A stretch of DNA of 63,437 nt, filler included, from Ministeria vibrans ATCC 50519 (GCA_943704425.1; 4 parts of 4 records of this genome joined end to end with filler, not necessarily neighbours in it); one strand, 5' to 3'; numbered from the whole stretch's first letter, positions 29,263 through 50,368 are shown. Translations and numbers: made by a program. The notes: generated from the sequence alone by a model not told the origin.

Positions 29263-29640
29263 TGTGGTGTCCACTGACGAGTGACGAGTGAGATGGGGCT
29301 AGAAAACAAACTGAAAATTACAAATTTACAATTAACAACTAAGCTCAAAGAGTTTTTCCCATACTTCCCTCACTTCTCGTGTGCTGCACTCCTGCTGTAG
29401 GGCTCTTTCGTGCGCAATTCGCTTGGCTCCTGCCTGACTGCCTCCTGCTGAGTGTAGTCACCCTACTGCCTAGTGAGCTTATTTCTTCGTCTTCTGCTGC
29501 TGCGTCGCGAAGGAAAACCATAACGCACAACAAACACCGACAACAAACGCCCACGAGCGATTTTGATCTTCGTGCTCGCCGGGAGCGCTAGAAAAGAATT
29601 AGCGTGCGTGAATTAAGTTGTATTCATCGGTGCGGAGTCC

Positions 29641-32600
29641 ATGTTTCATCGGTAAGGGGCATTCTCGATAATTTCCCACGAAGCCAAAACAGTTCACTGA
29701 TATTATTTTTTTTCTCCCCTAATCTTTATATACAGGTCTCTTCGAACCTTATTGGTAACTACATGCATTCTCTTGCTTACGACAAGCGCGCTGGCTCAGT
29801 CGAACGCGGACCACGCGGCGCTCATTTCGTTTTACGGCGATGTGTCGCCCCTGCCGTGGAACATCACCGAGGCGCCCTGCCGCAACAACACCAGCGCGTA
29901 TCTCGGCATACGCTGCAGCCACGGACGAGTGGTTTCCGTGGTCTTGCCTGGCGCTCGAGTTAAGCTCGTCGGCTCCGTCAATGCGCTGTGTCAGCTTGAA
30001 ATGCTTCAAGGCGTCTTCATGCCTCTCAATGCGCTCTCGGGCTCTCTCCTTCCGTGCTGGTGCAATCTAAAGTACCTCAAGACGCTGCAATTCACCAGCA
30101 ACCACCTTGACGGCGCCCTCCCCGACTGCTGGAGCCCCGCGTCGGCTCTTGCTTTCGTCGAGTTGGCCTTCAACAAGTTTACTGGCGAAATTCCTCCAAC
30201 GTTTTGTCTCGCCGCAACCCTCGAGTCTCTGCGCCTTGCTTACAATAATCTCTACGGTTTGATTCCAGACTGCTTTGGAGTCCATGCCTTTCCGACGCTG
30301 AGAACCCTCGACCTCTCTGACAACGCTCTCGGCGGATACTTTTCACCGCTTCTCTGCTCCCTCTCCTCTCTCACGACGCTCGCCCTCTCGAAAAACAACC
30401 TCGGGGGTGTACTGCCCCCATGTATCCATTTGATGGTGTCTCTTCAGTGGCTCGATCTTGCCCACAATTCCTTCGACGGCGACTGGCCCGCAAGCGACTT
30501 GAGCTTGTTGGACTTACGGCACGTGAACCTCGACTTCAATCGCTTCACAGGCTCCCTACTCTGGCTCATTCCCCTCAACAAGGCGGAAACGCTCATTTTG
30601 AGCAACAATCGCTTCTCGGGTCACCTTTATCTGCCCGATAATGCCCCTTTCCTGCAGACCTTTGTTGTCGCCAACAATTTTCTCGTCGGCCAGTTGCCTA
30701 GCAACCTCTTTGCTGACTACCCGAAGCTGACCTCGTTCGTCGCCAGCAACAACCGCCTCAGCGGCTCGCTACCAACCACACGCACACCATACTACCGCAA
30801 CTCGTCACTTCAGCTGTTCTCAGTGCAGACCAACTCCATTGGTGAAACCCTTCCTTCCGCACTCGAGCATCTCACAAGCATGCGTGAACTTGTGCTCTCT
30901 GACAACCGCTTCAAAGGCCCCATCGATGTCATCTACAGCATGCATGCTCTTGAACGTGTCAACCTCGACTACAATTTCTTCTCCGGCACCCTTGACTCGC
31001 TCAACCTTTTGCCTCAATTGCGCGAATTCACCGCCTCGACCAATCGCCTGTATGGCCGCTTCCCCGAGTCCCTCGTGCCACTCTTACCTCGCATGACTGT
31101 TCTTTCGCTCACCTACAACACCTTTACATGCTCGTTGCCGCCAGCTTTGAACAACATCTCCTCCATCAATGCCAACCTATCTCTCGACCTTTTGGAGGGC
31201 AACTACTTCGCGTGCCCCACTGTCGAAGAAAGCGAGGCCTTCAAGGGCGACTGTCTCCGTTTCGAACTGCTCAGCTCGCTGATTGTGGGCGCCGCCGCAG
31301 CCGTCGTCTTTATTTTTGTTTCCCTTTTCATGTTTTTGCGCTACCGGCGTCTCATCAACGCCAACCAACGTCGCGCGCAGTATGGTCTTCTTGCATCGCC
31401 TCATAACGACAACGACGTTGTTGACGACGCCAACGATGACGACGACAGTGCCAGTGCCAGTGGCGACACATGGACCAACGCATATGCGACGCAACCATCC
31501 CTAGACGTCTCCCATACCCCAACCGCTGCCACAGACTCCCATAGCTTTGATGGTGGTGATACAGACGAACTGCGTGAAGGATACCCTGCACTTCAGCCTG
31601 GCTCTGTCATGGACCCCCGTGTTTGGGCATTTTCTCGTTCGCTTCGCCACTTTTTTGTTCACCTGTTGGCGGCCCTCCGACGCGATCGGTTTCCTCAGGA
31701 GTGGTCTTTGTTGCGTCGCCACTGGCACCTGCTTGAGTTTGCACTTCTCCTGGCACTCGTTGCCAGCGCCAGTGCCATTATGATTTGCGCCATTCTCGTT
31801 CCCTACTATTTCTACTTGCTCAAAACGGACCCCAGCAGCTGTCCGACGCCTTTTGCCCTCAGTGCCATTGTACTTAATGTGGGAGAGGATGTGTCCAGTA
31901 CGTGGGTGTACCTGGCCATTGTGATGGGCCTCATTGTGCCCCTGGTCATAGTTTTTTTCTCCATCGCCGCGGTGGGTCTCGGTCATGTAGGTGTGCCGAG
32001 TCTGCTCAAGAAGCAAGCCTACAGCAATACCCTCTCCCGCCACGCTATCATCCTCAATCCCCTGCCACCCCTACCCATTGCCCACTTGGAGAACGAAGCG
32101 GCGAGGCGCAGCGCCGCCCGCTACTGGCTGCGCGACTACTTTGTGTCGCTCTACGGCCATCGCGAGATTGAGTCGCTTGACATTGTGCATCCGGGAACGC
32201 AACTGCTTGCAAAAGACGAAACGCGCTCGCTTTCCCAGCGCATGCTTGAATGGCATCGTTACGGCATGGAGAACGAGGCGTCCTTTGCCATCATCAAATT
32301 CAAACATGCCACCACAGCCAAGCGTTGTCTGCACGACCACAACCTGTCGCGACGCCGTGTCGCTTGCAACCTAAACATCACCTACTGTAGTGTGTGCCAC
32401 GTTCTGTCGACCAGCATTGTTCATGAGTCAATGCAGTCAACCGCACCACAACAAGGCACTCGAGCCAATCACAACAACGACATTGCTCTTGACCCGCTCA
32501 GCACCCCTCTTCTTGAACAGGTTCATGGACCTGGCAACGGGCAGCGCACCAATGTCAGCAACACTAGTGATGACTCGATAGACCGTCCCAACACCAACAT

Positions 32601-34458
32601 CAGCAGCAGCAGTGGCAGTAGTAACATTCACATTATGGAGAACGACGACGAGGAGGAAGAAGTACCCTTGTCGTGGTTGAGCGATCGTGTGCAGTCATCG
32701 GCCTATCGTCATACGCCCCTGATTTCGCGCTGTCGCTACACGCACATGGTGCACATGCGACCTGCGCCTTTACCTATCGACATTGAGTGGCACCATCTTG
32801 ATGCTGATCCCATTGGTGCATGGAAGCGTCAGATTGCTGCCTTTCTCGTGACCGTTGTTACCATTCTTTTTATGGCCTTCGTTAATGTTGGCTTCGTCAT
32901 TGCCGAGGACTCGCCTAAAGTCTCCGACAAATACCAGCCCCTCCTTGTGGTTGCGTTTGCCGCGCTCCATGAACTCACGGCGCACAAGGTGCTGCATCGT
33001 GCCATTCACTTGCAGCAGAGTCTCTTGCGCGAGCCGTCGCGTCGCCGCCATGTCCAGTGGTTCTTCCGCTTCTCCACCCTTCTCCACCTCTTCAACTCGG
33101 TCCTCCTCCCAATCTTTGCCCAGCTTGTCTTCTCAGGCGACTGCCTCCTCTTCCTGTGGGAAAAGCCGTCGCAACCCTCCGTCAGCGTCTCTTATACGAC
33201 GTGTCTTGTTGAGAATTTCCAGTCGCCTGGCTGCTTCAAAGAGAGCGACCACACCCTCACGTACACGTCCGACTTTATATTTCGCCTGAGTTCAAACTGT
33301 GCGGGTTCGCTCGAAATGAAATACGCTCCCGTCTTTCTCGTCGCCATGTTCTTTCGCGGGTTCCTCTTGCCCGCCCTCAGCATGGCTCGCCGTGCCATTA
33401 GTAAGTATCGCGAGCCACATCGCATGCAAGGAACAGCGGAGGCATCAGCTGCTTCTTCTGAAAATTCATCCGTTGAGACTGAGACGGCGGCGACAGCACC
33501 AACAGATTTCAATGAGGACGACGTCTTTCATGACTCAGCCGGAGTGACAGAGCCAGTATTGCCCTCGGACCTTGCTGCTGCCAGTGAGTTGGTGCAAGAT
33601 ATAAGAGAGACTCGGCGGGAGCGAGCGCGCACCCGCGCTAGCACGAATGGGTCCTCCCACAGCGCGCCGGGACGACGCACCTCCAGTTCATCGGCGATCT
33701 TTGCGCAAGAGTACGCAGCCGTGTGGCAAATGGAGGACAAGGAAGCAAACGAGCCGCTTGACGACAACGAGATGGCAAGACGCAAAGAGCTACAACATCG
33801 ACTGAAAAGTGTGACGGATGTGACGACGAGTGAGCCATCAATGAATGCACTGCCGAGCCTGAGCTACCGTGCCGTGATGTTGCATCCGCCGTCGCAGCCC
33901 TCGATGCCGCCCCAGTCGGTCATGGCCATGTCCGAGCACATTTGTGTGCTTGCCATCATCCTGACGGTAGGCGTACAGGCACCGTATGTTGCGCTTGCGT
34001 GTGTACTCAGCGAGTGGCTTCGTCTGTGCGCCGCCTGGAATGTCACGCGTTTTGACAAGAGCATGCCTGACGTGCTCAAGAGTGTCCTGGATATTCCTCA
34101 GTTTGTGCCCATGCCTTTCTCATGTGTCGCTTTTGTTCTTTTTGCTGTGCACACATACATTGCCTTTGATGTGTTCATTGGTCAGTGGCCCAGCACGGGT
34201 CTCTTCTTTGGCCTCTTCGTCCTTGACTGGCTTGCATTTTTCGCGGCCATGTACTACGCGGGCCACCACCGCCAACGACCCTGGCCTCGTCTGCGCATGC
34301 ACGACCACGAGACACTCGTTCTTGCGCCTTCCCACAGCGATCCAAATATCGTGCACCGTCTGCGCATCAACGGCGTCTGCATGGCTCACGTCGACTCCGT
34401 CACTCGCAGTGACATGGAGTACCTCCCTCCATCTGCCCCAGATTCTTCCGTTGTGTAG
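29641..34458 (+). CDS. Signal peptide + ~16 plant-type LRRs + OSCA/TMEM63(CSC1)-like multipass channel (~1577 aa)
   Basis: Exon 1 ATGTTTCATCG (29641-29651), intron 29652-29735, exon 2 to 34458. LxxLxLxxNxLxGxxP repeats with N-cap and GNYFAC C-cap; about 11 hydrophobic segments; OSCA-like motifs RHAIILNPLP, LRDYF, FAIIKF and APLPIDIEWHHL. Confidence 0.8.
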
Positions 34459-34502
34459 ACCCCAGCAAAACAATTTGTATGATTGTGTGAATGCGTAAAT
34501 AC

Positions 34503-34554
<52 letters not shown>

Positions 34555-34619
34555 ATTTTTATCATTATAATTTATTATCATTATAATTCTTAGTGAGAGA
34601 AAAGAAAGTGTACTAATGT

Positions 34620-37487
34620 TCAGATGACGCGCTTTGCATTGGTGTTCTTAGCGGCGGCCTCCTCAGCCTCAAGACGCGCCTTCTCCGCCTCGAGCTCCTT
34701 CTCTATGACAGCAGCGCGCTCAAGCACATCCGCCTCGTCTGAGGGCAGCTGACGCGGCGCATACATCAGCAGATATGCAATGTGCCAGTCCCCTACACGG
34801 ACATGCAGATAGATAGATAGATAGATAGATAGAGAGAAAGAGTGGAGGAAGAAAAAACAAAGTGATAAGGAGAGATAAGGGAGAACACAACGGTAGAGAG
34901 AGAAAAAAAAGTGAGAGAAGAGACAAATCAAGACGTGTCAGTGTCGCAGCGTTGTTGACTGAGTGCGCGTACCGCCACCACTGAGGCGAAGGACGTCATC
35001 GGTGGTCGCATTCGACACGGTGTCGTCGTCGTACTTGAGCCAGTGGTCTCCCTTGTTCCGTGCCCACCCGACATAATGCCCTGAGTTGCTTGAGCGGCCC
35101 TTGTGCGTTAGCACCGCAGTCAGTTCGTACAAACCGCTGTTATTGGAGCCAATGTCTGACAGGACACGACGCAAAAAGCAACACAATGAAAAAACAAAAA
35201 AAAAAAAACAAAAAAAAATATAAATAATAATTATAATAATAATCATCATCATAATCAAACGGCGACTAAGTCGTACCGTCCTCAAATGAGTAGGGTGGCG
35301 GAGTCTTGTTGGTCTCGTTCTCGTTGCCAAACGAGTACAGACTGCTCTCGGTCGACTCGTCCGTCTCCATGGGCGCAGCGCCCTTTCCCTTTCGCTATAC
35401 CAATGCGACTATCAGTGCAAGCTACGCTATCAATGTAACGTACCAGCCCCTTTGCACGCTGGGCGAGAATGAGTTGGGCGTCGTCGTACGCCTTGAAGCG
35501 ATCACGCATGGGGACAAGCTTGGCCTGCAGCTCAGGCGTACACAGCGTGTACGTGTCCAGCACAGCACCGTATTTGACATCCTATGTTGCACCATAATCA
35601 ATCATGACCGGATCATCCAACACAACATCGAATGGGCAATTCAAAAATGCAAATGCGTACTCTGAGAATTTTTGCCGAGACATTGCCCTTCCAGCAAAAG
35701 CGAACCTCCTGGACCGTGAGAAAGGCTGGGAGGCGTGAGATGCGCGACTGGCGCACAAAGACAGCGTCACGATCGAGCACCGCCGAGTGTTTCGTGATCT
35801 TCTCGTCGAGTCCGTTGCGCAGACCCGCAAGCAAATGGTTCACTTCGACCGAAATGTGACACGAAAGCATATTGAAGGTCTCGCTTGTCACCTCACGTTC
35901 GTCCGACCCTTCTTCGTCGCACACACGCTCTGTGGCAAACCGACCCGTCATAAATTCCTCGACCACATTGGTTCCGCCAGGAAACAGAGCGGGCAGACGG
36001 CTCGACAGTGTGCGCAGAAACAAATTAAAGCACTCCTGCGCATCCTGTTGCTGCAGACCACCGTTGCCCATCTCTGCAAACTACACGACAACAAATAAAG
36101 ATGAGAGGCAGAAAAGCAGCAACAGTGAGAAATGAAAAAAATTAATAGTGATGGAACGAGAGCATTTAGGGTTTGTGTGTGAACAAGTGAAAGAACACTG
36201 AAATAACACTGAAAAAAACACAAAGGGTTATAAAAATGGGAAAGTGACGAAACAAACACAATAGAATAAAAATAAAGTGACAAAACAAACACAAGAGCAA
36301 AAATGACAGGCCAAGAAATTATTATTACTGTAATAATAACAACAACAATAATAATAATACTAATAATAACTTATAATTATTTTATTATTATTAAAACAAA
36401 CAAAAAAATAATGGAGAATAATGATCATAATGATAATAATACAAATGGGACAGATGAATATAAAATAAAAGTAGATACCGGAGGGTGGAGACTGTGAAGC
36501 ATGCCAAAAAAGCGCAGGGGCTGCACTGAGCCACCGCGCTCCATGTCACGCAAGAGATCGCGCAACGCCCACACAAGATTGCTCTCTTGGTCAAAGGACA
36601 GTGCGCCTTTAAACCTACACGGAGGTGTGATGAGACTCCAGTGTGAGATAAAGCAGGAAATGTGTTGTGCAACAGCCTACTGTGAAATGGCATGACGGAG
36701 CGGCTCAATCTTGCGGAGACACTGGAGCGACGCGTTCATGTAGCACGAATTGCCCAGATTCTCCAGTCCCGACGGCTCCTTCGTCTACAACACACACACA
36801 CACACACACACACACAGTAGTACGCATACGAGCAGATGTCAGTGGCGTTGAAATTAGAATCGGTTCATACCGCAATAGCAAGTTCCTTCTCCGACATATC
36901 TTCGACAAATTTGGTCGCCTGTGTGGGTGCCTGAAGCAGTTCACCAACTGTACCCATCATCATGAGAGTTTGACCCTGAAACAACGCAAAAGAGCACAGG
37001 TGAGTCCTTCACTACGCCACTCCACGTGGTTGCGACGGGCGTACCGGCTTGAGATTGAGCGTCTTGAGGTCGGCCTCGTCCTTCAGCGTTCCTCCCTTCA
37101 CCATGACCTTCTGACGCTCGGGAGCAACACCCGTCAGCGCAAACAACTGTGCCTTGAAGACCAACCCGGGCTCGTCGAGATCCACCTCCACATCCGACAG
37201 CTTCTGTTTGCCCCACTTGACGTTCACTGCACACATTCCAGAGTGTGAGTGAGAAGATGGCGTTTCAGACAGACACATCTCTTCTTGACGCGCAACAACC
37301 CACAGGCGAGACACCGTTGAGCGCCACGCCACACGCACACACGCACATACAGTACACAGTCAACCCTTCCACGAGTTGCAACTCCCACCGCGCACTGTGC
37401 GGTGCAGAATGAGAGATGTTCGCGAACGTTTTCTGTTGCTTTTTTTAAAATAATAATCAGAGTCCATCGACCCAACATTGACGGCAT
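34620..37487 (-). CDS. USP14: Ubiquitin carboxyl-terminal hydrolase 14 / Ubp6, multi-exon
   Basis: VNVKWGK..FKAQLFALTGVAPERQKVMVKGG (UBL); GLENLGNSCYMNA; QQDAQEC; YELTAVLTHKGRSSNSGHYVGW; GGDWHIAYLLMY. The start (MPSML-V, weak GTCGAT donor) is tentative. Confidence 0.92.
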
Positions 37488-38640: not shown

Positions 38641-40770
38641 TCAGTGGGAGTGCGCGCCTTCAGGTTTTGGAGGATCAATGGAGAGCACCCTGATGTTCAG
38701 ATGATCAGCCATTTCCTTAGACGCCTACAGGGCAAAAAAATAAATAGAGAGTTAGGTATAGCGCGCACGCGTGTGTGCGTGAGTGTAAGTGTGTATGCAT
38801 GTGTGTGTACGTGTGTGTATGTGTGTGAAGTGATCATAACAATAATTGTATCATCTGTGTGACTTAACAAGAGCTCAATGCGAACATCAACAATGACAAA
38901 ACGTACCACAACACAGTAGTGGGTGAGGGATAGGCCCGTCCACACACAGCAGGCAGCCAGTAGATACAGCTCATGTAGCCCCAGATGACAGTACAGGTTG
39001 AGCGCAAGTAGCACAGGCGCAAACAGGACAGAGTCTACGCACACGAGTCAATCGCTCACTTAGACACTCCCATCTCATTTTTGTGCGTACCAGTCAGAGG
39101 GAATGGGCTCTTACTCATCATTGCCACAACCATTTGGCATGAGATTTTGGCAAATGCAAAACCAAACGTAAACATAAACAGACAAAAGTGCTCTCTACAC
39201 AACAACGCAAAGTAATTCAGGGACATTTGTCATTCAAAAAAAAAAAAAAAGACCTGTAGTCATCCGAATGAACAAAGGTGTAGTAGACGGAGGCAAGGAG
39301 GACAAGAAGGGGAAATAGTGGCGATGCGACACTGGTGCGTGCGACAGTCGCCGTCGCGTGCTTGACAAAGATGGTGTGCAAGGTGCGCGCCAGCGTGTAC
39401 AACATGCCAGCCAGAGTTAACCCCAGTACAACCTATGAAAGTGCAGAGCCGACTGTCATTTCTCTTTCTGTTTCTTTCAGTGCATTGTACCAGTCTTAAA
39501 GGCACACCCGCCATTACTTCTTGGTCCCACACTTGTGGTCCCATTACCGCTGTCGTCAGCGCCATTGAAATCACTCCATACTGTCCTTCCGTCACATCAA
39601 TTCTATACAAAAAATGAATGATGACGATCGACTTTCTTAGCATTCGCACACGTACGTTCCAAACTCAAGCGTTCCCGTCACATACGCCTGCCAATGCGCA
39701 GCAAAATAACAACACATAAATGTACAGGCGAGTCCAACAGCCAGCGGTGTTCCTCCCATGTTACTGCACACCACTGTCGCAATCACAACAAAGACAGTCG
39801 AGATGGCATCACACCCTACACACAATGTGTTAGACACGCATATGGACACACACTTGAGCAACCATTTGCATGACATAGCATTTCAGTGGTTCCATTTCAT
39901 TTTGACCAACAGGGTGTCGTTTGTGTGTGTATGTGTGTATGTGTGTGTGTGTGTATGTATGTAGTATGTATGTATGTGTGTGTGTGTCTTTTTAGTTTTT
40001 AGTGTGTGTGTGTCTTTGTGGTGTGTGTGTGTGTCTTTGTGGTGTGCGTGTAGCTTTGATAATAATGCGATTGTTCTTAGTTTGAAATACCATGATCAAA
40101 AAGTTCGCCAAGCGGCGATGCTGTTTTAGTTCGTCGCGCTTGCTTGCCATCAATCGCATCAAGCGTCTGATAGAAGAATAAGCCGAGGGCGAATGTGGCA
40201 TAGGCCCACGCTGGTGCCTTGAGGGTACGAGTGAGTTGGTTCACTTGCGATTGCGTCTCTCGTTTCCTACTTCTCCTTTGCCCGTTGGACAGTAGTAGAC
40301 GACCGCTAAAGAGGATCCCACATTCATCGCCAGTCCGACCAGCGTCAGCAGGTTGGGCGCGACCCACAGAGGCACAAGTGTCACAACAAAATTCCAAAAT
40401 GGCTACAACACAAGAAAAATTTATTTCGCGGCACTTTCCTGGTCGCATTCAACGGTGCGCATGCGTGGCAACTCAACAGGAAGTATGATAGCGCGCGTGC
40501 AGGAAAAGACAAGGGGCACCAGGGTCTTCTCAAGGGCGGTGGGGAAGGTAAACAAGACGAGGGGGAAACGCACCCGCACACGCAAGACGCACGGATGCTC
40601 GCGACAGCGAAGGGCCGGTGCCGTCATAGGACACGCTGGCGCAACAGCTGCCTTCAACATAAGAAGGGGCGCCGCGCCGTTCAAACCTGCAAGAGAGTGT
40701 CCAAAATGCTCCGTCCAGTCATCGAATACTGGTGCGACGCGAGTCCTTGCAGTTGTTTTTCCGTCAACAT
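38641..40770 (-). CDS. Choline/ethanolamine phosphotransferase (CEPT1/CHPT1 family), multi-exon
   Basis: [16 protein letters not shown]..|[20 protein letters not shown]; [28 protein letters not shown]|CD (CDP-alcohol phosphotransferase motif); [14 protein letters not shown]. Confidence 0.92.
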
Positions 40771-41502: not shown

Positions 41503-42717
41503 TTAGAATGCGAGTTTGTTCTTCTTGCGTCCTTCCATTGTGGATATGTGGCAGTGCACTTTGGCCTGGAACCCGTAACACGCGCGCAGGGCCCTCTGCA
41601 CATCCCCCAGCACTTCCGCAATCTTTTCGCCGTGTCGCCCCAAAATAATTACCTTCTCTCCTTCGCGCTAAATACAAAATGTGTGCGAGTAAGAGAAAGA
41701 GATTTCGAGTGAGATTGAGTTGATAAGTGAGAACGTGAATGAACGAATGACTGGCTGAGTGAGTGAGTGAGATTGAGTGGCGTTCGTTTTTGCGTTTTGT
41801 GTGCACGTACGCCAATCTGGAGGGTATGGCCAATTGACATTCGTCCGTCGGGCATCACAGTCCAAGTTAGAGTCCTACGAGACACACATACACACAGGAG
41901 AGCGATGAATAAAACATTCAAAATTGACTGGTGTGTGAGTACTTTTGACTGTAAGCGTATGGGATTTGTCCATCGTAGCGCTGAAGAATCTGCTCGCGAA
42001 TGAGCTCATGAAAATGAAACAGTGGACTTTGTAGTGTTTTCTGTTGTGGGTTCACTAGAAACGGCTCTTCCTCTCGTTTGTTGCACTCGTCGATGAGATA
42101 CCTCTAAGGTTTTTGAAAAAAGAGTTTCATGAGGAGACATACATGGTCACACACACACACACACACACACCACATTGGTTCTTTTTCCTCTCTCTTTCTC
42201 TCTCTCTCTCTCATCCGTTTGCTTACTCTGAGTTGCGATACTCCGTTTCCACTCTTCGCAGACACAAAGAACACTTCCTTAAAATTGCGATTGTGCTCCT
42301 GCGCCAACTCAGTCACTTTTGCTCGCAGTGCCGTTTGCTCTCCCTTTGACACCAAATCGCACTTATTCAACACTAAAATCTACACAAACCAGCTGAGCTA
42401 CACACACTCTCTCACTCAGCTCATATTTTCTTGTTTTCTGTTACCTGGAAAGTGTTTTCTGGCGGAGCATATTTGTCACTGGTCAGAATCTCCGTAGCGA
42501 GATTAGACAAATCGCGAGACATATCAACGACAACCATTCCTAAACACACATACACACACATGAGTATACATTCAGTCTCTTTACATCCGTGTGCGTCTCT
42601 TTGTACCAATTTGCGCTTCAGCAAGACTCTCTTTGGGAGAAGTGAGAAGACTGCGCGGCAGTCGATATCTAACACAACAAGCAATCAATCAATCAATCAA
42701 TCAATCATCAATCAATC

Positions 42718-42765
<48 letters not shown>

Positions 42766-43085: not shown

Positions 43086-43140
43086 CTGAAAATGACAAGT
43101 AGGACAGTTACAACCTCATCCATCCCTCTCTCTATCACTA

Positions 43141-43144
43141 TCTT

Positions 43145-43228
<84 letters not shown>
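43141..43228. repeat. (CT)n microsatellite at the Era/pecanex junction
   Basis: Long CT run between two opposite-strand gene fragments, each lacking its 5' part. Confidence 0.9.
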
Positions 43229-44680: not shown

Positions 44681-47077
44681 ATGAGTTCTGCGGAAAACGA
44701 CGAGGTTGCAGCGGCGCAGGCCCGTGCCACGGCCCAAGGTGATTTGGTTCGCCAACTGAAATCAAACAAAGAAACGCCCGCCGAAGAGGTACCGTCACCG
44801 TCCACGTGTGCTGCGCTGCGCGGCCGACATCTTGCCCCCTCCCTGTCGTCCCCCGTCAAAACAGCGTGTATTTGCAGCTCCACGTGAAACTATTGCTCAT
44901 CTTTTTTTTTCTCTCTCCCTTTCTGTGCTACAGTTGACGGCCGCCATTGCTCAACTGAAGGAGCTGAAGGCCGCTGTGCAGGCACTCACTGGCGAGGCTG
45001 CGCCAGCCAAGCAGAGCGGCGCAGGGGGCAACAAGAAGAAGGGGAAGCAAGCAGCCAAGGCGGACGAGGGCTCCTCCAGCACCACTGGGCTCAAGACTCC
45101 CAAGGTATGCATGCCTCTCTTCATCCACCCCTCCCCACCTTGCTTTTCCTTTTCCTTTTTTTCTTTTTTTTTTCTTTTTTCACTAACTTTTTTTGGGGGT
45201 TTCAGGGAATGCGTGATTACAGTCCCAAGGAGATGGAGGTGCGCGAGCGTGTGTTTGACATTGTCACCAGTGTCTACAAGCGCCATGGAGCAGTTACCAT
45301 CGCGACGCCGGTTATGGAAATCAAGGTGAGACACGATTGTGCAATGTGATTTTCTGACTGGTCTGCTGTGGCTGTAGGAAACGCTCATGGGCAAATATGG
45401 CGAAGACACCAAACTCATTTACGAAGTCAACGACCAGGGCGGCGAGTTGCTTGCTTTACGTTATGATCTGACCGTTCCGTTTGCCCGCTACGTTGCAATG
45501 AACGGCATTGAGCAAATCAAGCGCTACCACATTGCTCGTGTCTACAGGTACACATTTGTCTTTGTTTCTTTCTTCCTCCTCTTGTGACTTTATTTCTTTC
45601 TCTTCTTTTTCAAATGATGATCATCTGAGATCCATTATCTGAGTGACTTCACTGAAGACAAAAACAGACTGATACCCTGATGAAAAATAGAAGAAACCAC
45701 CAATAACTTTTCTCCCCGTTTCACTACTCTTTTATTTTTTTGCTCACGCCTCCGTTCCTGTTTTGTAGACGTGACCAACCAAGCATGACGCGTGGGCGAT
45801 ACCGCGAATTCTTTCAGTGCGACTTTGACATTGCTGGACAGTACGTCGCAATGGTGCCCGACGCAGAGTGTGTCAAGACAGTGACGGAGATTCTCGATGA
45901 AGTCGACGTCGGCAAGTACACAGTCAAGCTCAACCACCGCTCTCTGCTCGATGGAATCTTTGCCGTCTGCGGTGTGCCAACCGATCGCTTCCGTCCCATC
46001 TGCTCGGCCGTCGACAAACTCGACAAGGTAGGGAACAAGTGTCGCGTCGTCTTTGTTGACCTGACAACACTATTTCAATTGTGCTTCAGATGTCGTGGGA
46101 AGAGGTGCGCAAGGAAATGGTTGTCGACAAGGGACTGGCCGAGGAGGCGGCAGACCGCATTGGCACATATGTGCTGCGTAGCGGCGGACGCGAGTTTGTT
46201 GACGAGCTCATGGCCGACGAAGTGCTTGTGGCCAACAGCGATGCCAAGAAGGGTCTGCAGGACATGGCACTACTTCTCGAGTACTGCGATGTCTTTGGCA
46301 TTGCCGACAAGGTGCGCTTTGACCTGTCGCTCGCCCGTGGCCTCGACTACTACACCGGATGCATTATGGAGGCGGTTCTCGAAGGTGCCGATGTAGGCTC
46401 CGTTGCTGGCGGCGGCCGCTACGACGGTCTCGTTGGCTCTCTCAAAAAGAAGGTATTTTTTGTTGTTGTTGTAGTTGTTGCCTGCATCGCAAAAAAAAAA
46501 TCATTTCCCTATGGTGTTTTTTTTTTTGTTTCTCTCAGGGCAAACCTGTACCGTGCGTTGGTGTCAGTATCGGCATCGAGCGTCTTTTTGCCATTATGGA
46601 GCGTCGAATGCTCACAGGCGAGCCTCCTGTCCAGACGCAGGTCTATGTTGCTTCAGCCGGCCCCCGTACGCACATACGCACCACTCCTAACTGTGCATCA
46701 CACCTACTCACCGATATACAACTCTCCTGTATTTCTGCTAGGTATGCTGAAGGAACGTCTTCGTCTCTCCTCGGAGCTGTGGTCGGCCAAGATTAAGACG
46801 GAAATGCCGTACAAGAAGGACCCTAAGCCACTGGATCAGTTTCAGGTATGCAATGTGATTCATCCTCCCTCTCCTTCATTTTCCCTACGACACATCTCAA
46901 CCTTTGTACTTTTTTTAGTATTGCGAGAAGAACAACATTCCTCTGTGCGTCATCATTGGCGGCGAAGAGTTGGAGCGAGGGATTGTCAAGATCAAGGACA
47001 TGCGCACCACCGAGCGCACCGAGACGGAAGTGCTTCGGAGCGACCTGGTGACACAGCTGCGCACTATGCTCGCCTGA
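44681..47077 (+). CDS. HARS1: Histidyl-tRNA synthetase with N-terminal WHEP domain, multi-exon
   Basis: QGDLVRQLK (WHEP), LKTPK|[64 protein letters not shown]. Confidence 0.96.
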
Positions 47078-47208
47078 TGACCCCCTCACTCACTCCGATT
47101 GTATTATTATTATGAGTGCAAGCTGTTGTTCAATTCCACTGTGTATAATTATACTGGATTGTGATGTTTGCCTTGAGTCCATATACCGGCGTTTCGCTTC
47201 ATTCGTTT

Positions 47209-49977
47209 TTAAACTCGCTCATACACATAGAGATAGGCTAGGTCGAGCGGAGGGGCGCGTGACACTTCGACTTTCTCGTCGTTGAACAGAATCCAGCGAT
47301 CGCTTCCGTCTTGGGCCGTTGTGCGCACATGGCACACGTAGTGGCCCACCAGTGTTGATTTGCCCATGTGCGAAATGAGTGCTCGCAGTCGATAGAGACC
47401 CTTGCCGTCGTCACACCCTGCGGCGTCTCCGCCGGCGACATCAGCGTTGTCGTTCGTGTTATTGTCGTCGTCGTCGTCGTTGGCATCGTCGGGTTCGTCC
47501 ATGTGACTGAAGATCCAGTCGACGGCACGCTCTGCGTTGTTTCCCGTCGACTTAAGCGCCTTGATGGCACGTACACGGGGGAACCCCAAAGCACAAATCT
47601 GTTCAATGAGTGGCTCGGGAATAGCACCACTGGCGGGCGCGGCGCTGCCAGGAACGACAAACGGATCTGCAAAATCTGCGTCGCCCATGTGCTCCATGAC
47701 CCACTGCATGGCCGCCTCGACGCCACCACCCGACGTGCGCGTCGCATACACTGCACGCTTGCAGCCCTCCTCGGCGAATCCCATGGAAGCAAGTTGCGCG
47801 ACAGCAGCTTCGTCCATCACAAAGGCAGTCGCCGCCTCGGCCGCTCCGGCACCCTCTTCGTTCTCGGGCAACTCCGTCTCGCCCTCAACAAGGCCTGTTC
47901 CTCGCAAGTTCTCCAAATCAAGTTCGAGTGGCATGTCGACACTCACATCAAGTTTGCGCGGCGTCCAGTCTTCGGCGACATAAAAGCGACGCAGCTGGAG
48001 AACCAGGACGCGAGGCATCGTCGCGAGACGAGTGGTCTTGAGTGCACTCGTTCGACCCTTGATGGCACTCGAGTAGAAGTCGGGCACAGTCTCGGTGGCC
48101 GCGAGGGCCGCCAGACACGCCGTGTGGGGCACCTTGGGAATGACAGGCTCGTCATTTTGCGTGTGCGTCTGCGTCGACGTCATTGCCTTTTTGGCCTCCT
48201 CGTACTCGCGCACCTCCACCAGATTGGTGGCAGCCTCCATGGGAATGGGCACGGCAAGTATGTTGTCGGTGTGATGGGCGTAGCGAACTGCGTGCGATGT
48301 CGCGCATTCGACGCGCTCCTCGACGGTGTAGGCGTACGCTTGGGCAGGGTTAGGCAAGGCACTGCGCACGCGATGCTCTTCGCGCTCAATCAACGTCAGC
48401 AAATGCTGATAAAACTCGGCGGCGTCCTGTTGTTTCACCGTGCTAAACTCGGGGTGGCCCTTGCCCACAAGTGTCTTGAACATGCGCGGTCGAATGCCAA
48501 GCTGGCTGGTGGTGTCGGCCTCGCCACGAGCGACAGCCACCGGCGACGGCACAGAGTACTCGCCCGACACCAGTGCCTCGCCGAGTTTGCTCATTTGCAC
48601 GGTGAAGTCATTGGCACCCTGCAGCGGGTCGGCGTGCGCACGAATGTCGCGCGCCGCATCGCCACAGTAGCGCGCACGCATTGGCTCCGAGGCGAACAGC
48701 GCTTGCACCACCGAATTAAGGTAGCACGAGTTGCCAAGGTTGTCAACGCCCGTCAGACCGGGTCCGCGAGCCGCCTCGAGTTTCGAGCCACTCTCGGTGA
48801 GACGACTCCACTCGTAGCGAGTGTTCGCCTCGAGATCCAGCTCGGCCATGGTCTTCTCTGTCTTCACCTGAGACGCCACATTGATGCCCCAATGTTCGAG
48901 GTACTGAGCCAGGCGTGGTACTAGCACCATGTCGTCTTCGTCGTAGGAGTACACGTCGGCCGTGCCCTCCGCCGTGATGGTGCCCAGCTTCACAGCGAGT
49001 GGGTATTTGGTGTCGTTGTAGAAGTCAAGCGCATGCCCATTACCACCGCTGCCATCGGCGTACTTGCGACCACACAGCAGCGTGCCGTCCGTCAGGTTCA
49101 GCCAGAGGTTCTGCGTCAGCTCACATCGGCTGCACTTGAGCCCCGTCGGCGGTACCTTGACTCCATTGTCCAGCTGCTTCAGAGTTTCCGCGTGCTTGCT
49201 CACCTTCAGCGGCTCCGCAACCCAGCTCGCAAGCGCATCACTCTTGCTTGCCGAGTCGGCCTGCATCACGCCGTCGATGGCACGGCGGAGCGCACCAGGC
49301 AACAGGTCCGAGGGCAATGCGACACGTACACCCGTACCGTGCACCACAAGTGCATTGTGATCATCGTACTCGACCGGCTTGGCGTCGGCAGCAAAGCCAC
49401 CCTCGACACCAATGCCTAAGACAGTGGGTGCTGGCGCCGTTGTCGTTGACTCTTGGATGGCGGCCGCGGCTGCGTCGTTGTCATCGTCGCTCTTAGCAAG
49501 ACGCACTTCGCGACGCAAGTGGAGAAAGACGCGTGAGCCGGTGCGCTCCACGTACCAGTCGAGCGACGCTGCCGACAGCCCAATGAAATGTTCGAGGCAG
49601 ACGTAGATGCCGTCGCGATGGTCGGGCGAGGCAAACGAGAGCAGGCCTTCGTCTTTGAAGACGCGGTCGGCCGCCGACGGAACACGCACCTTGGCGGTGT
49701 ACGGTGCAAGCTGTGCGGCAAGACTCACGGCGGCCGGGTCGTCCGAGTCTGCATACGCGGTGGCAGACGACGCGTCGCCCGGCTGGTCTTTCGCGTCGTC
49801 GTCGTCGTCGACCATGGGCGCGTCAATGTCGGCGTCGTCCATGTGCTCAAACAGCCACGTCGCCGCGGCGTCTGCGTTGCTATTGCCCGTGGCACGCAGC
49901 GCCTTTTCGCAGCGGACCGACGGAAACCCCATCGCAGTGAGTTGCGACAGCAAATGTGTATCGGCAGCAAAAGGCAT
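47209..49977 (-). CDS. USP5: Isopeptidase T (USP5/USP13/Ubp14) with an extra N-terminal UBA, intronless
   Basis: ZnF-UBP NLWLNLTDG..CGR..GGNGHA..YPLAVKLGTIT..DVYSYDED; NLGNSCYLNS; QQDAAEF; two internal UBAs; ISHMGKS..GHYVCH. Confidence 0.93.
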   Translation of the reverse strand: MPFAADTHLLSQLTAMGFPSVRCEKALRATGNSNADAAATWLFEHMDDADIDAPMVDDDDDAKDQPGDASSATAYADSDDPAAVSLAAQLAPYTAKVRVPSAADRVFKDEGLLSFASPDHRDGIYVCLEHFIGLSAASLDWYVERTGSRVFLHLRREVRLAKSDDDNDAAAAAIQESTTTAPAPTVLGIGVEGGFAADAKPVEYDDHNALVVHGTGVRVALPSDLLPGALRRAIDGVMQADSASKSDALASWVAEPLKVSKHAETLKQLDNGVKVPPTGLKCSRCELTQNLWLNLTDGTLLCGRKYADGSGGNGHALDFYNDTKYPLAVKLGTITAEGTADVYSYDEDDMVLVPRLAQYLEHWGINVASQVKTEKTMAELDLEANTRYEWSRLTESGSKLEAARGPGLTGVDNLGNSCYLNSVVQALFASEPMRARYCGDAARDIRAHADPLQGANDFTVQMSKLGEALVSGEYSVPSPVAVARGEADTTSQLGIRPRMFKTLVGKGHPEFSTVKQQDAAEFYQHLLTLIEREEHRVRSALPNPAQAYAYTVEERVECATSHAVRYAHHTDNILAVPIPMEAATNLVEVREYEEAKKAMTSTQTHTQNDEPVIPKVPHTACLAALAATETVPDFYSSAIKGRTSALKTTRLATMPRVLVLQLRRFYVAEDWTPRKLDVSVDMPLELDLENLRGTGLVEGETELPENEEGAGAAEAATAFVMDEAAVAQLASMGFAEEGCKRAVYATRTSGGGVEAAMQWVMEHMGDADFADPFVVPGSAAPASGAIPEPLIEQICALGFPRVRAIKALKSTGNNAERAVDWIFSHMDEPDDANDDDDDNNTNDNADVAGGDAAGCDDGKGLYRLRALISHMGKSTLVGHYVCHVRTTAQDGSDRWILFNDEKVEVSRAPPLDLAYLYVYERV

Positions 49978-50368
49978 TCTCAATCGTTTGGTCGGCGTGG
50001 GGGGAACTGGCGAGGCAGAGCGTTTCCGACTGTGGTCGCTAATCTTGGCGTTCAACAAATGAAACGAAAGGCGAGTCGCCGCGAGCGAGTAAAGAAAGAA
50101 AGATTGAAGAAAAAAAATGAATCGTTCGTGATTGATCTCTCATCAAAAGAGTATGTGTATGGTCTGTACAATTGATTTTCGTATGCTTGTACTTCAGGAT
50201 GTACTACTGGGAGTCGACGACAGAGGGTCTCCTTTGGCGTTTGTCTATGATACATTCGAGAGGAGTGCGCGTCTGTTGACGATGCACACCATAGACGCCG
50301 TGGCTGCGTCAGGTGCGCAGCGCCATTGGACACGAACCCCAAGCGACCGCCTCACCCCACGCCCCCCC

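Follow-up and report, generated by a model that had tools for sequence, protein, structure and literature searches.

We examined a 63,437-nucleotide stretch of DNA from Ministeria vibrans ATCC 50519 (GCA_943704425.1), in which four parts of four records of this genome are joined end to end with filler and which is referred to here as the window, and focused on a gene on the (+) strand that the original prediction, made from the sequence alone, had described as a leucine-rich repeat (LRR) receptor ectodomain fused to a full OSCA/TMEM63-like ion channel within one uninterrupted exon. The gene, which has its ATG at 29641 and its stop at 34458 and encodes a product of 1577 amino acids, consists of two exons. 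The open frame, 29752-34458, comprises 1568 codons, a length well beyond chance in DNA of ~54% GC content, and its head carries no ATG; when position 29651 is spliced to 29736, the frame is regained and the product begins with MFHR-SLRTLLV..., which reads as a typical signal peptide. The coding part of exon 1 (29641..29651) is made up of the ATG and eight further bases (codons M-F-H and the first two positions of the R4 codon), the intron (29652..29735) is 84 nucleotides long with GT..AG ends (gtaagg...tatacag), and exon 2 (29736..34458), free of further introns and collinear with an RNA contig, carries the remainder of the coding sequence with the stop codon. The joint is seen in contig X1 (4985 nucleotides, from a transcriptome-like run), which matches 29463-29650 and 29735-34493 and skips exactly 84 GT..AG bases; the shorter side of the joint measures 188 bases, and X1 has no other joint up to 34493. 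From its start at 29463 this contig continues into the ATG, giving a 5' untranslated region (UTR) of at least 29463..29640; it spans the 5' UTR, the splice and the complete open reading frame (ORF), with the DNA of the adjoining genes lying outside it. A second contig, X2, begins within the intron and is otherwise collinear, and the gene stretch is present in sequencing runs of three studies. Because a single transcriptome contig covers both the LRR half and the membrane half, these belong to one gene rather than two, and we conclude that both are encoded on one mRNA. Thus, the predicted single transcript held true, and the predicted single exon was replaced by two. The 3' UTR is seen at 34459..34493, followed directly by a (TAT)~30 microsatellite at 34503-34592 (Tandem Repeats Finder); because this repeat is masked, the RNA contigs stop at 34493, and the true 3' end of the mRNA lies out of sight. 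We also note that position 30816, the third base of codon 364, is represented by both G and C in DNA run X6 and only by C in two RNA-type runs; the presence of both bases suggests a heterozygous diploid source.

Apart from the exon count, the features listed in the original prediction were recovered where it had placed them, i.e. the ATG at 29641, the N-cap, the GNYFACP cap, a transmembrane (TM) helix at ~31279 followed by RYRR, two further TM helices, the cytosolic motifs, a motif at ~32764 (exactly at 32764-32799) and eight more helices. The signal peptide (residues 1-25; exon 1 together with 29736..29799) was inferred by inspection from a hydrophobic core at residues 6-24 followed by ALA-QS. 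The ectodomain (29803..31269) comprises an N-cap (residues 27-66), LRRs (residues 70-484) and a C-cap (residues 485-515). The N-cap contains a Cys pair within DHAALISFY...C...YLGIRC (residues 29-64), and the C-cap contains GNYFACP at residues 492-498. A listing of the repeats gave about 17 plant-type LRRs of 24 residues each, of the LxxLxLxxNxLxGxIP type, where ~16 had been predicted; their assignment to the type found in plant receptor-like kinases (RLKs) stood. Five N-x-S/T sites and 13 Cys residues are present in the ectodomain. In a Pfam scan, the N-terminal half matched LRR_1, LRR_8 and LRR_4 models only, with no match of the LRRNT_2 model to the query and no Pkinase match in the 1568 residues scanned, as the prediction of an LRR domain followed by no kinase had it. 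When the ectodomain was compared with PDB sequences using phmmer, the plant receptors MIK2 (2.8e-80), GSO1 (2.8e-67) and FLS2 (1.7e-66) were retrieved, together with the BRI1 family. The layout (Cys-pair N-cap, 24-residue LRRs, C-cap and TM helix) is that of plant-type LRR receptor ectodomains, and we conclude that this half is, as read from its sequence, a secreted LRR domain of the plant RLK type with no kinase. In LRRs 2-7 (window 29995-30435, residues 89-233), Cys residues occur at or near the same repeat position after (L/I)P (LPCWC, LPDC, FCL, IPDC, LLC and LPPC) and are missing there from later repeats; it is possible that they form a cysteine ladder along one face of the solenoid.

The membrane half begins with TM0 (residues 516-538; 31270..31338; Kyte-Doolittle peak 2.76), which is predicted to run from outside to inside and is followed by RYRR and more basic residues, with ten Lys and Arg residues in the flanks of the loop after TM0. 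An acidic linker (residues 539-671; 31339..31737), predicted to be cytosolic and disordered from its composition and a predicted local distance difference test score (pLDDT) of about 29-46, leads to the TM1-TM2 hairpin with its short outside loop (residues 672-752; 31738..31980; peaks 2.77 and 2.89). A predicted cytosolic insert of 276 residues (residues 753-1028; 31981..32808) separates TM2 from TM3. Next comes the TM3-TM6 core (residues 1029-1229; 32809..33411; pLDDT 88-97), in which the extracellular TM5-TM6 loop (33133..33285) is modelled as a long β-hairpin (strands at fragment positions 648-659 and 666-677), followed by a disordered cytosolic TM6-TM7 loop (residues 1230-1395; 33412..33909; pLDDT mostly <50), TM7-TM10 (residues 1396-1516; 33910..34272; pLDDT 85-95), which contain the motif G1416...P1420, and a basic C-terminal tail that is cytosolic by composition and topology (34273..34455). 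Hydropathy alone gave ten peaks, those after TM2 running from 1041 to 1509, and the AlphaFold2 helices separate TM7 from TM8 and thereby give 11 TM helices, in line with the ~11 that had been expected. Basic residues cluster after TM0, TM4, TM6 and TM10, i.e. on the predicted cytosolic sides, and parity is consistent along the whole chain. Since a secreted ectodomain precedes a ten-helix core whose TM1 starts inside, an extra helix is required, which is TM0; the signal peptide, ectodomain, basic stretch and parity together predict an OSCA-type TM0, an N-terminus outside and 11 TM helices. The disordered cytosolic loops amount to about 430 residues. Sequence searches with the membrane half were negative: Pfam gave no match with the whole protein at E≤1 and only a chance SR-25 match with three pieces at E≤10, phmmer gave no match to PDB sequences at E≤10, and a word-index search with query region 520-1568 was blank, a result that says little.

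An exhaustive phmmer search against 1.8 billion cluster representatives returned 31 weak matches (best 7e-12, about 30% identity), all of which map to about residues 1032-1282 (TM3-TM6). The relatives, about 20-30% identical to the query, are named 'LRR protein' or 'hypothetical' in their source databases. In eleven of the 31, LRRs are part of the same chain, in one case with an LRRNT_2 cap. Further, in two seemingly LRR-free relatives, LRR-rich ORFs end just upstream on the same strand, in one case 13 bases before the membrane ORF, and these pairs were probably split by a prokaryote-style gene caller; two shortened relatives start inside the LRR C-cap. In total, at least 15 of the 31, with a chrysophyte among their sources, carry or adjoin LRRs. 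In the metagenome contigs L005 (555-7313, +) and L004 (760-7271, +), very long LRR ORFs (1477 amino acids in one contig and 762 plus 584 amino acids in the other) precede the membrane-module ORF on the same strand, and some relatives may carry ectodomains two to three times larger than that of the query. The named sources are the chrysophyte Chlorochromonas (Ochromonas) danica, with four paralogues, and one choanoflagellate transcriptome contig (P0007, EukProt Didymoeca costata), the remainder being metagenomes or unlabelled assemblies; either the family reaches beyond stramenopiles, or the P0007 contig comes from another organism in that culture. Other searches say little: a word-index search with alignment A2 found nothing, probably because its words come from the variable first 500 residues, a search with alignment A4 found only the relative P0001 itself and one LRR-driven match, and the profile of alignment A1 against the PDB was swamped by LRR columns and was uninformative on the membrane part. 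We conclude, from sequence comparison, that the query is no orphan but a member of a divergent, unnamed family whose LRR head and membrane module recur together.

Conservation in the family is strongest in TM3-TM6. The family signature consists of N1054 (TM3), LFNS..AP with N1124 and P1129 (TM5), Y.P (TM6) and G...P (TM7/8), in which G1416 and P1420 are each 96% conserved in the family alignment; S1063, Y1200, P1202 and P1216 are also among the conserved core residues. The TM1-TM2 region could likewise be aligned in the relatives and has the common motif LLPxY...C.(F/Y)GW..(S/T)AA(F/Y)L. Four Cys residues, C1140, C1160 and C1170 in the TM5-TM6 loop and C1192 just beyond it at the start of TM6, are 94-100% conserved; as topological parity places this loop outside, disulfides can form there. 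The conserved polar residues N1054, S1063 and N1124, together with prolines in TM3, TM5 and TM6, would suit a pore or groove.

The membrane half (residues 505-1577) was modelled by AlphaFold2 with a 32-sequence alignment, and the models were compared with known structures using Foldseek and, independently, a VIA scan of 48,161 representative PDB chains. The core of the query was predicted with a pLDDT of >90 over about 335 residues (range 88-97). In the VIA scan, ranks 1-13 were all taken by TMEM63A, OSCA1.2, OSCA3.1, TMEM16F/A/K, afTMEM16, TMC-1/2, OSCA2.3 and Ist2, with superfamily Z scores of 17.1-9.8 over about 300 residues at 4-6 Å, and unrelated helical proteins appeared from Z 8.8; the best matches were TMEM63A (Z 17.1, 307 residues, 4.1 Å) and OSCA1.2 (Z 17.1), with TMEM16F within 1 Z. 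In a second VIA search, the top 12 were all TMEM63/OSCA proteins (Z 18.7-17.2), and nhTMEM16 scored 17.2. Foldseek placed TMEM63B first (E 0.012, probability 1.00), followed by OSCA3.1, TMEM63A/C, nhTMEM16 and TMC-2. The relative P0001 (658 amino acids) consists of an LRR C-cap, TM0 and ten helices, has no large inserts and was modelled with a pTM of 0.74. Its best VIA matches were TMEM63A (Z 23.9, 367 residues) and OSCA1.2 (Z 22.9) over TM1-TM10, the superfamily extending to 14.1 and the next match scoring 8.3; in a second search, TMEM63C led (Z 26.1, 341 residues, 3.5 Å), the top ten were all TMEM63/OSCA proteins, and the best TMEM16 scored 22.9. We note that the helices of its TM1-TM2 hairpin superpose on TM1-TM2 of OSCA/TMEM63. 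When the whole membrane half was submitted to the ESM Atlas, PHM7_cyt, Anoctamin or RSN1_7TM domains were carried by each of the ten nearest named clusters, whose sources are ciliates, haptophytes, oomycetes and green algae. The 10-helix fold of the anoctamin-like superfamily (Pfam clan CL0416) is thus found in the predicted structures only, which bear out the OSCA/TMEM16-type fold proposed for the C-terminal half, with OSCA/TMEM63 first by VIA. We conclude from these models, with high confidence, that the membrane half is predicted to have the anoctamin-superfamily fold and, with moderate confidence, that its OSCA/TMEM63 branch is favored.

The TMEM16-type cytosolic N-terminal dimerization domain is not found before TM1, where the secreted LRR domain and then TM0 are located, and no Asp or Glu at ≥60% conservation was seen in TM6-TM8 in the family alignment, which is not structure-aligned, as a counterpart of the TMEM16 Ca2+-site acidic residues; TMEM16-type Ca2+ activation was rejected on the latter ground. 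The TM2-TM3 insert, interrupted by about 130 low-complexity residues, is a candidate for a degenerate PHM7_cyt-like domain. It holds RHAIILNPLP, LRDYFVSLYG and FAIIKF..AKRC, and, when submitted alone to the ESM Atlas, its named nearest clusters were all PHM7_cyt (scores 0.88-0.83, which count as leads by the standard of the tool). Just before TM3 lies the motif APLPIDIEWHHL (32764..32799; pattern match at residue 1014), which may correspond to the OSCA motif at this place. Pure chance is an unlikely source of this AP.P.D..W..L motif, given its location before TM3 and the presence of AP..D.DV.W.NL at the same place in P0016, a fragment from another assembly.

Several points weigh against the assignment to OSCA/TMEM63 and against a channel as such. 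The insert, with its four collinear motifs that may resemble those of OSCA, has a pLDDT of <60 and is modelled as helical with no β-sheet, and Pfam is blank for it at E≤10. Nearly all relatives have just 40-60 residues between TM2 and TM3 and also lack the AP.P.D..W motif; because they lack both, the OSCA-specific cytosolic domain is unproven, and the identity of the insert as a PHM7_cyt (RRM-like) domain is not proven. Hence, for the RRM-like domain that had been predicted, the position and the ESM neighbors agree, but the Pfam result, the low-confidence model and nearly all relatives do not. The RSN1_TM, PHM7_cyt and RSN1_7TM matches anticipated after residue ~500 were not obtained even at E≤10 with pieces of the protein, nor was that to LRRNT_2; because the three OSCA models are unmatched, membership of a 'full OSCA' is not borne out by sequence. 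The Anoctamin, RSN1_7TM and TMC models matched neither the query (E≤1; pieces E≤10) nor the 24 relatives scanned, and, because Pfam and PDB sequences gave no match, the superfamily link rests on predicted structure and language-model features. Foldseek put fungal TMEM16 scramblases first for P0001, the gap in VIA Z between OSCA/TMEM63 and TMEM16 is just about 1.5-3 units, and the modelling alignments held just 32-33 sequences. Query TM0-TM2 and the cytosolic insert were modelled at low confidence (TM0 pLDDT 45-65), and the place of TM0 within the fold is not set by the models. Further, the runs behind X1 and X2 were classed as RNA by guess, a classification for which the spliced contig argues. 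Finally, the fold is no proof of ion conduction, because lipid scramblases and the tether Ist2 share it.

The closest known system is OSCA/TMEM63/CSC1 (TC 1.A.17.5), the best structural match of the query (Z 17-19) and of its relative (Z 24-26) over 300-380 aligned residues. The query has in common with it 11 helices, TM0 with the N-terminus outside, a large TM2-TM3 cytosolic segment and a long TM6-TM7 loop, but differs in matching none of the Pfam models RSN1_TM, PHM7_cyt and RSN1_7TM and in having a 490-residue LRR ectodomain where OSCA has a few residues; further, its family adds the Cys-rich β-hairpin in the TM5-TM6 loop, and nearly all of its relatives lack the TM2-TM3 domain. The 10-helix fold is also common to TMEM16 and TMC (Z 14-23), but in TMEM16 the N-terminal domain is cytosolic and acidic residues that bind Ca2+ are conserved in TM6-TM8, whereas the query has an extracellular N-terminus and no conserved acidic residues, and TMC has separate tether proteins and no TM0, which the query has. 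Plant LRR receptors (FLS2, MIK2, GSO1 and BRI1) have the same type of ectodomain and a single helix after the C-cap, followed by a kinase or short tail, whereas in the query ten more helices of a channel-type fold follow; plant receptors reach Ca2+ channels, including OSCA1.3, indirectly via kinases. To our knowledge, the only well-known protein to combine LRRs and a channel in a single chain is LRRC8/VRAC, but the LRRs of LRRC8 are C-terminal and cytosolic, and its pannexin-like pore, a hexamer of 4-TM subunits, has an unrelated fold. No LRRC8 structure was among the fold matches of the query (Foldseek, VIA scan), and kinship was rejected, as the two differ in fold and in the side of the membrane on which the LRR lies.

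Seven families make up the Anoctamin Superfamily, including the uncharacterized CSC-L1 (TC 1.A.17.3) and CSC-L2 (TC 1.A.17.7), which consist of PHM7_cyt and an Anoctamin/RSN1_7TM-type membrane domain, CSC-L2 occurring in unicellular eukaryotes only (Medrano-Soto et al. 2018, PMC5868767). The nearest ESM Atlas neighbors of the query are clusters of this kind, but Pfam recognizes CSC-L1 and CSC-L2 and not the query. The same paper does not take up LRR domains, remarking just in general that some large superfamily members 'may consist of fusion proteins'; the word 'leucine' is absent from its main text, and 'LRR' occurs just in the cited title on LRRC8A. Surveys of diatom and brown-algal channels (PMC11085791; bioRxiv 10.1101/2024.02.19.579948) contain ordinary OSCAs only. 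In the searchable literature, which does not cover subscription journals, we found no fusion of LRRs with OSCA, TMEM16, TMEM63 or anoctamin, in keeping with the original prediction that no protein of this architecture had been described. We conclude that the domain architecture is new and that the protein represents a new, divergent family inside a known superfamily.

With regard to the surroundings of the gene, a convergent multi-exon gene lies just downstream (window 34620-37340, -), whose ORF pieces resemble, by eye, a USP14/UBP6-type deubiquitinase, with an N-terminal ubiquitin-like piece, a QQDAQE box and a C-terminal His box; its last exon comes to within ~160 bases of the LRR gene stop, and a contig over this downstream gene has a high depth (551) in run X2. 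Further along, a 949-amino-acid single ORF (window 47212-50058, -) is USP5/isopeptidase-T-like, with UCH, two zf-UBP-type fingers and three UBA domains. On the (+) strand at window 45740-47112, the ORFs 45740-46396 and 46081-47115, which overlap in different frames, both match tRNA-synt_His and are probably one histidyl-tRNA synthetase gene with an intron or frame change. Tandem Repeats Finder also identified other long microsatellites in the window, i.e. (TG)~64 at 39922-40051, (CAAT)~22 at 42678-42765 and (CT)~51 at 43126-43228.

Overall, it is very likely that the gene encodes a single-chain protist surface protein in which an LRR domain of ~17 repeats and TM0 are joined to a 10-helix anoctamin-superfamily domain closest to OSCA/TMEM63 in shape and topology. 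What this protein does is less certain, and we propose that it may be a receptor-operated permeation module, i.e. a receptor-operated channel, a function to which we would assign slightly less than even odds. The membrane half may conduct ions or lipids, as suggested by the polar residues and prolines conserved within TM3, TM5 and TM6 and by a core that is constrained at 20-30% identity; control by the LRR domain is suggested by its direct attachment to TM0 and by its probable position over the hairpin peculiar to the family, at the outer mouth. In such a mechanism, binding of the LRR domain to a soluble ligand or the surface of another cell, or pairing induced by a partner, would shift TM0, and the seating of the LRR domain on the disulfide-bonded TM5-TM6 β-hairpin, which lies where the TM3-TM7 pore or groove opens to the outside, may shift as well. 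The pore would thereby be biased open, and cations, probably including Ca2+, would enter, with a kinase or a separate channel being unnecessary. Taken together, this identity and this mechanism are the best explanation, with a probability of roughly 0.5. The sensing of bacterial prey, which the original prediction had raised as a possibility, is neither favored nor disfavored by these results. The broader proposition, that these proteins are the first known class of single-chain receptor-channels on the OSCA/TMEM63/TMEM16 fold in which an extracellular LRR domain for the recognition of patterns or partners directly gates the pore or lipid groove, is tentative, and we would currently lean against it.

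Of the other explanations, the strongest, by analogy to tether-gated TMC channels, would have the LRR domain anchor a force-gated OSCA/TMEM63-type channel to extracellular material, such as the cell covering, matrix or another cell, displacement of which would pull TM0 and open the pore. The top structural matches are indeed mechanically activated OSCA/TMEM63 proteins, TMC-1/2 match too, the LRR domain is joined straight to TM0 through a short Cys-containing cap, and, like the force-gated branches, the family shows no conservation of TMEM16-type acidic residues in TM6-TM8. We nonetheless regard a tethered mechanosensor as unlikely: the matrix partner is only putative, the closest solved relatives of the ectodomain are plant LRR receptors that bind ligands, and OSCA/TMEM63 proteins are gated by membrane tension and, as is established, need no tether. 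Fungal TMEM16 and TMEM16F scramble lipids via a groove of the TM3-TM7 kind, and scrambling has been reported for TMEM63B; accordingly, the module could instead pass phospholipids, with the LRR domain triggering local exposure of lipid in contexts such as cell-cell recognition, mating, feeding or membrane repair. This would fit the Foldseek ranking of P0001, which places nhTMEM16, afTMEM16 and TMEM16F first, the VIA Z scores of 20-23 for those scramblases, near those of OSCA, and the Anoctamin domains of the ESM neighbors. However, no conserved Ca2+-site acidic residues are seen in TM6-TM8, all four VIA searches, two with each model, place TMEM63/OSCA first by Z (with TMEM16F within 1 Z in one), the cytosolic N-terminal domain typical of TMEM16 is absent, and TM0 with an N-terminus outside is of the OSCA type; a receptor-coupled scramblase is distinctly improbable in our judgment.

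Still harder to maintain is the view that the membrane half is a degenerate, non-conducting pseudo-channel that serves as a multi-pass anchor or platform for LRR-based adhesion or recognition, its disordered loops recruiting partners. The sequence is too diverged for any Pfam match, the chain has its roughly 430 residues of disordered cytosolic loop, and Ist2, a member of the fold, acts mainly as a tether (PDB title and established knowledge). Against a scaffold, polar residues, prolines and a glycine in the TM helices are conserved at about 20-30% identity and the core is predicted with very high confidence, which argues for selection on the membrane domain itself beyond hydrophobic anchoring. 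Lastly, although automatic gene calls split the LRR and membrane parts into adjacent ORFs in two relatives, an assembly chimera or read-through joining an LRR gene to a membrane-protein gene has a negligible chance of being correct, as the frame is open over 1568 codons, the stretch recurs in the runs of three studies, the LRR and membrane parts are fused within a single ORF in eleven relatives of other origin, and the one spliced RNA contig over the whole gene led us to reject a chimera or two genes.

Osmosensing, touch, hearing, Cl- secretion and lipid scrambling are based on proteins of the OSCA/TMEM63, TMEM16 and TMC groups, and there is active debate on how their pores are reached by force or other inputs. 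Among the literature and solved structures compared, no member of these groups has a large extracellular receptor domain, and an LRR domain fused to TM0 would provide a natural, built-in handle on the gating of the OSCA/TMEM63/TMEM16 fold. Because the membrane module is unseen by Pfam, the proteins that carry it are filed as 'LRR protein' or 'hypothetical', which suggests that surveys based on domain annotation would miss this family. If these proteins were indeed such a class of receptor-channels, a fold known for gating by membrane tension, Ca2+ or tethers would also be gated by a ligand of an ectodomain, and recognition would be converted into a Ca2+ or lipid signal within one molecule, with no kinase relay. 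Surface recognition would then lead to ion flux by a route unlike that of plants, in which an LRR receptor, kinases and a separate OSCA or CNGC channel act in turn.

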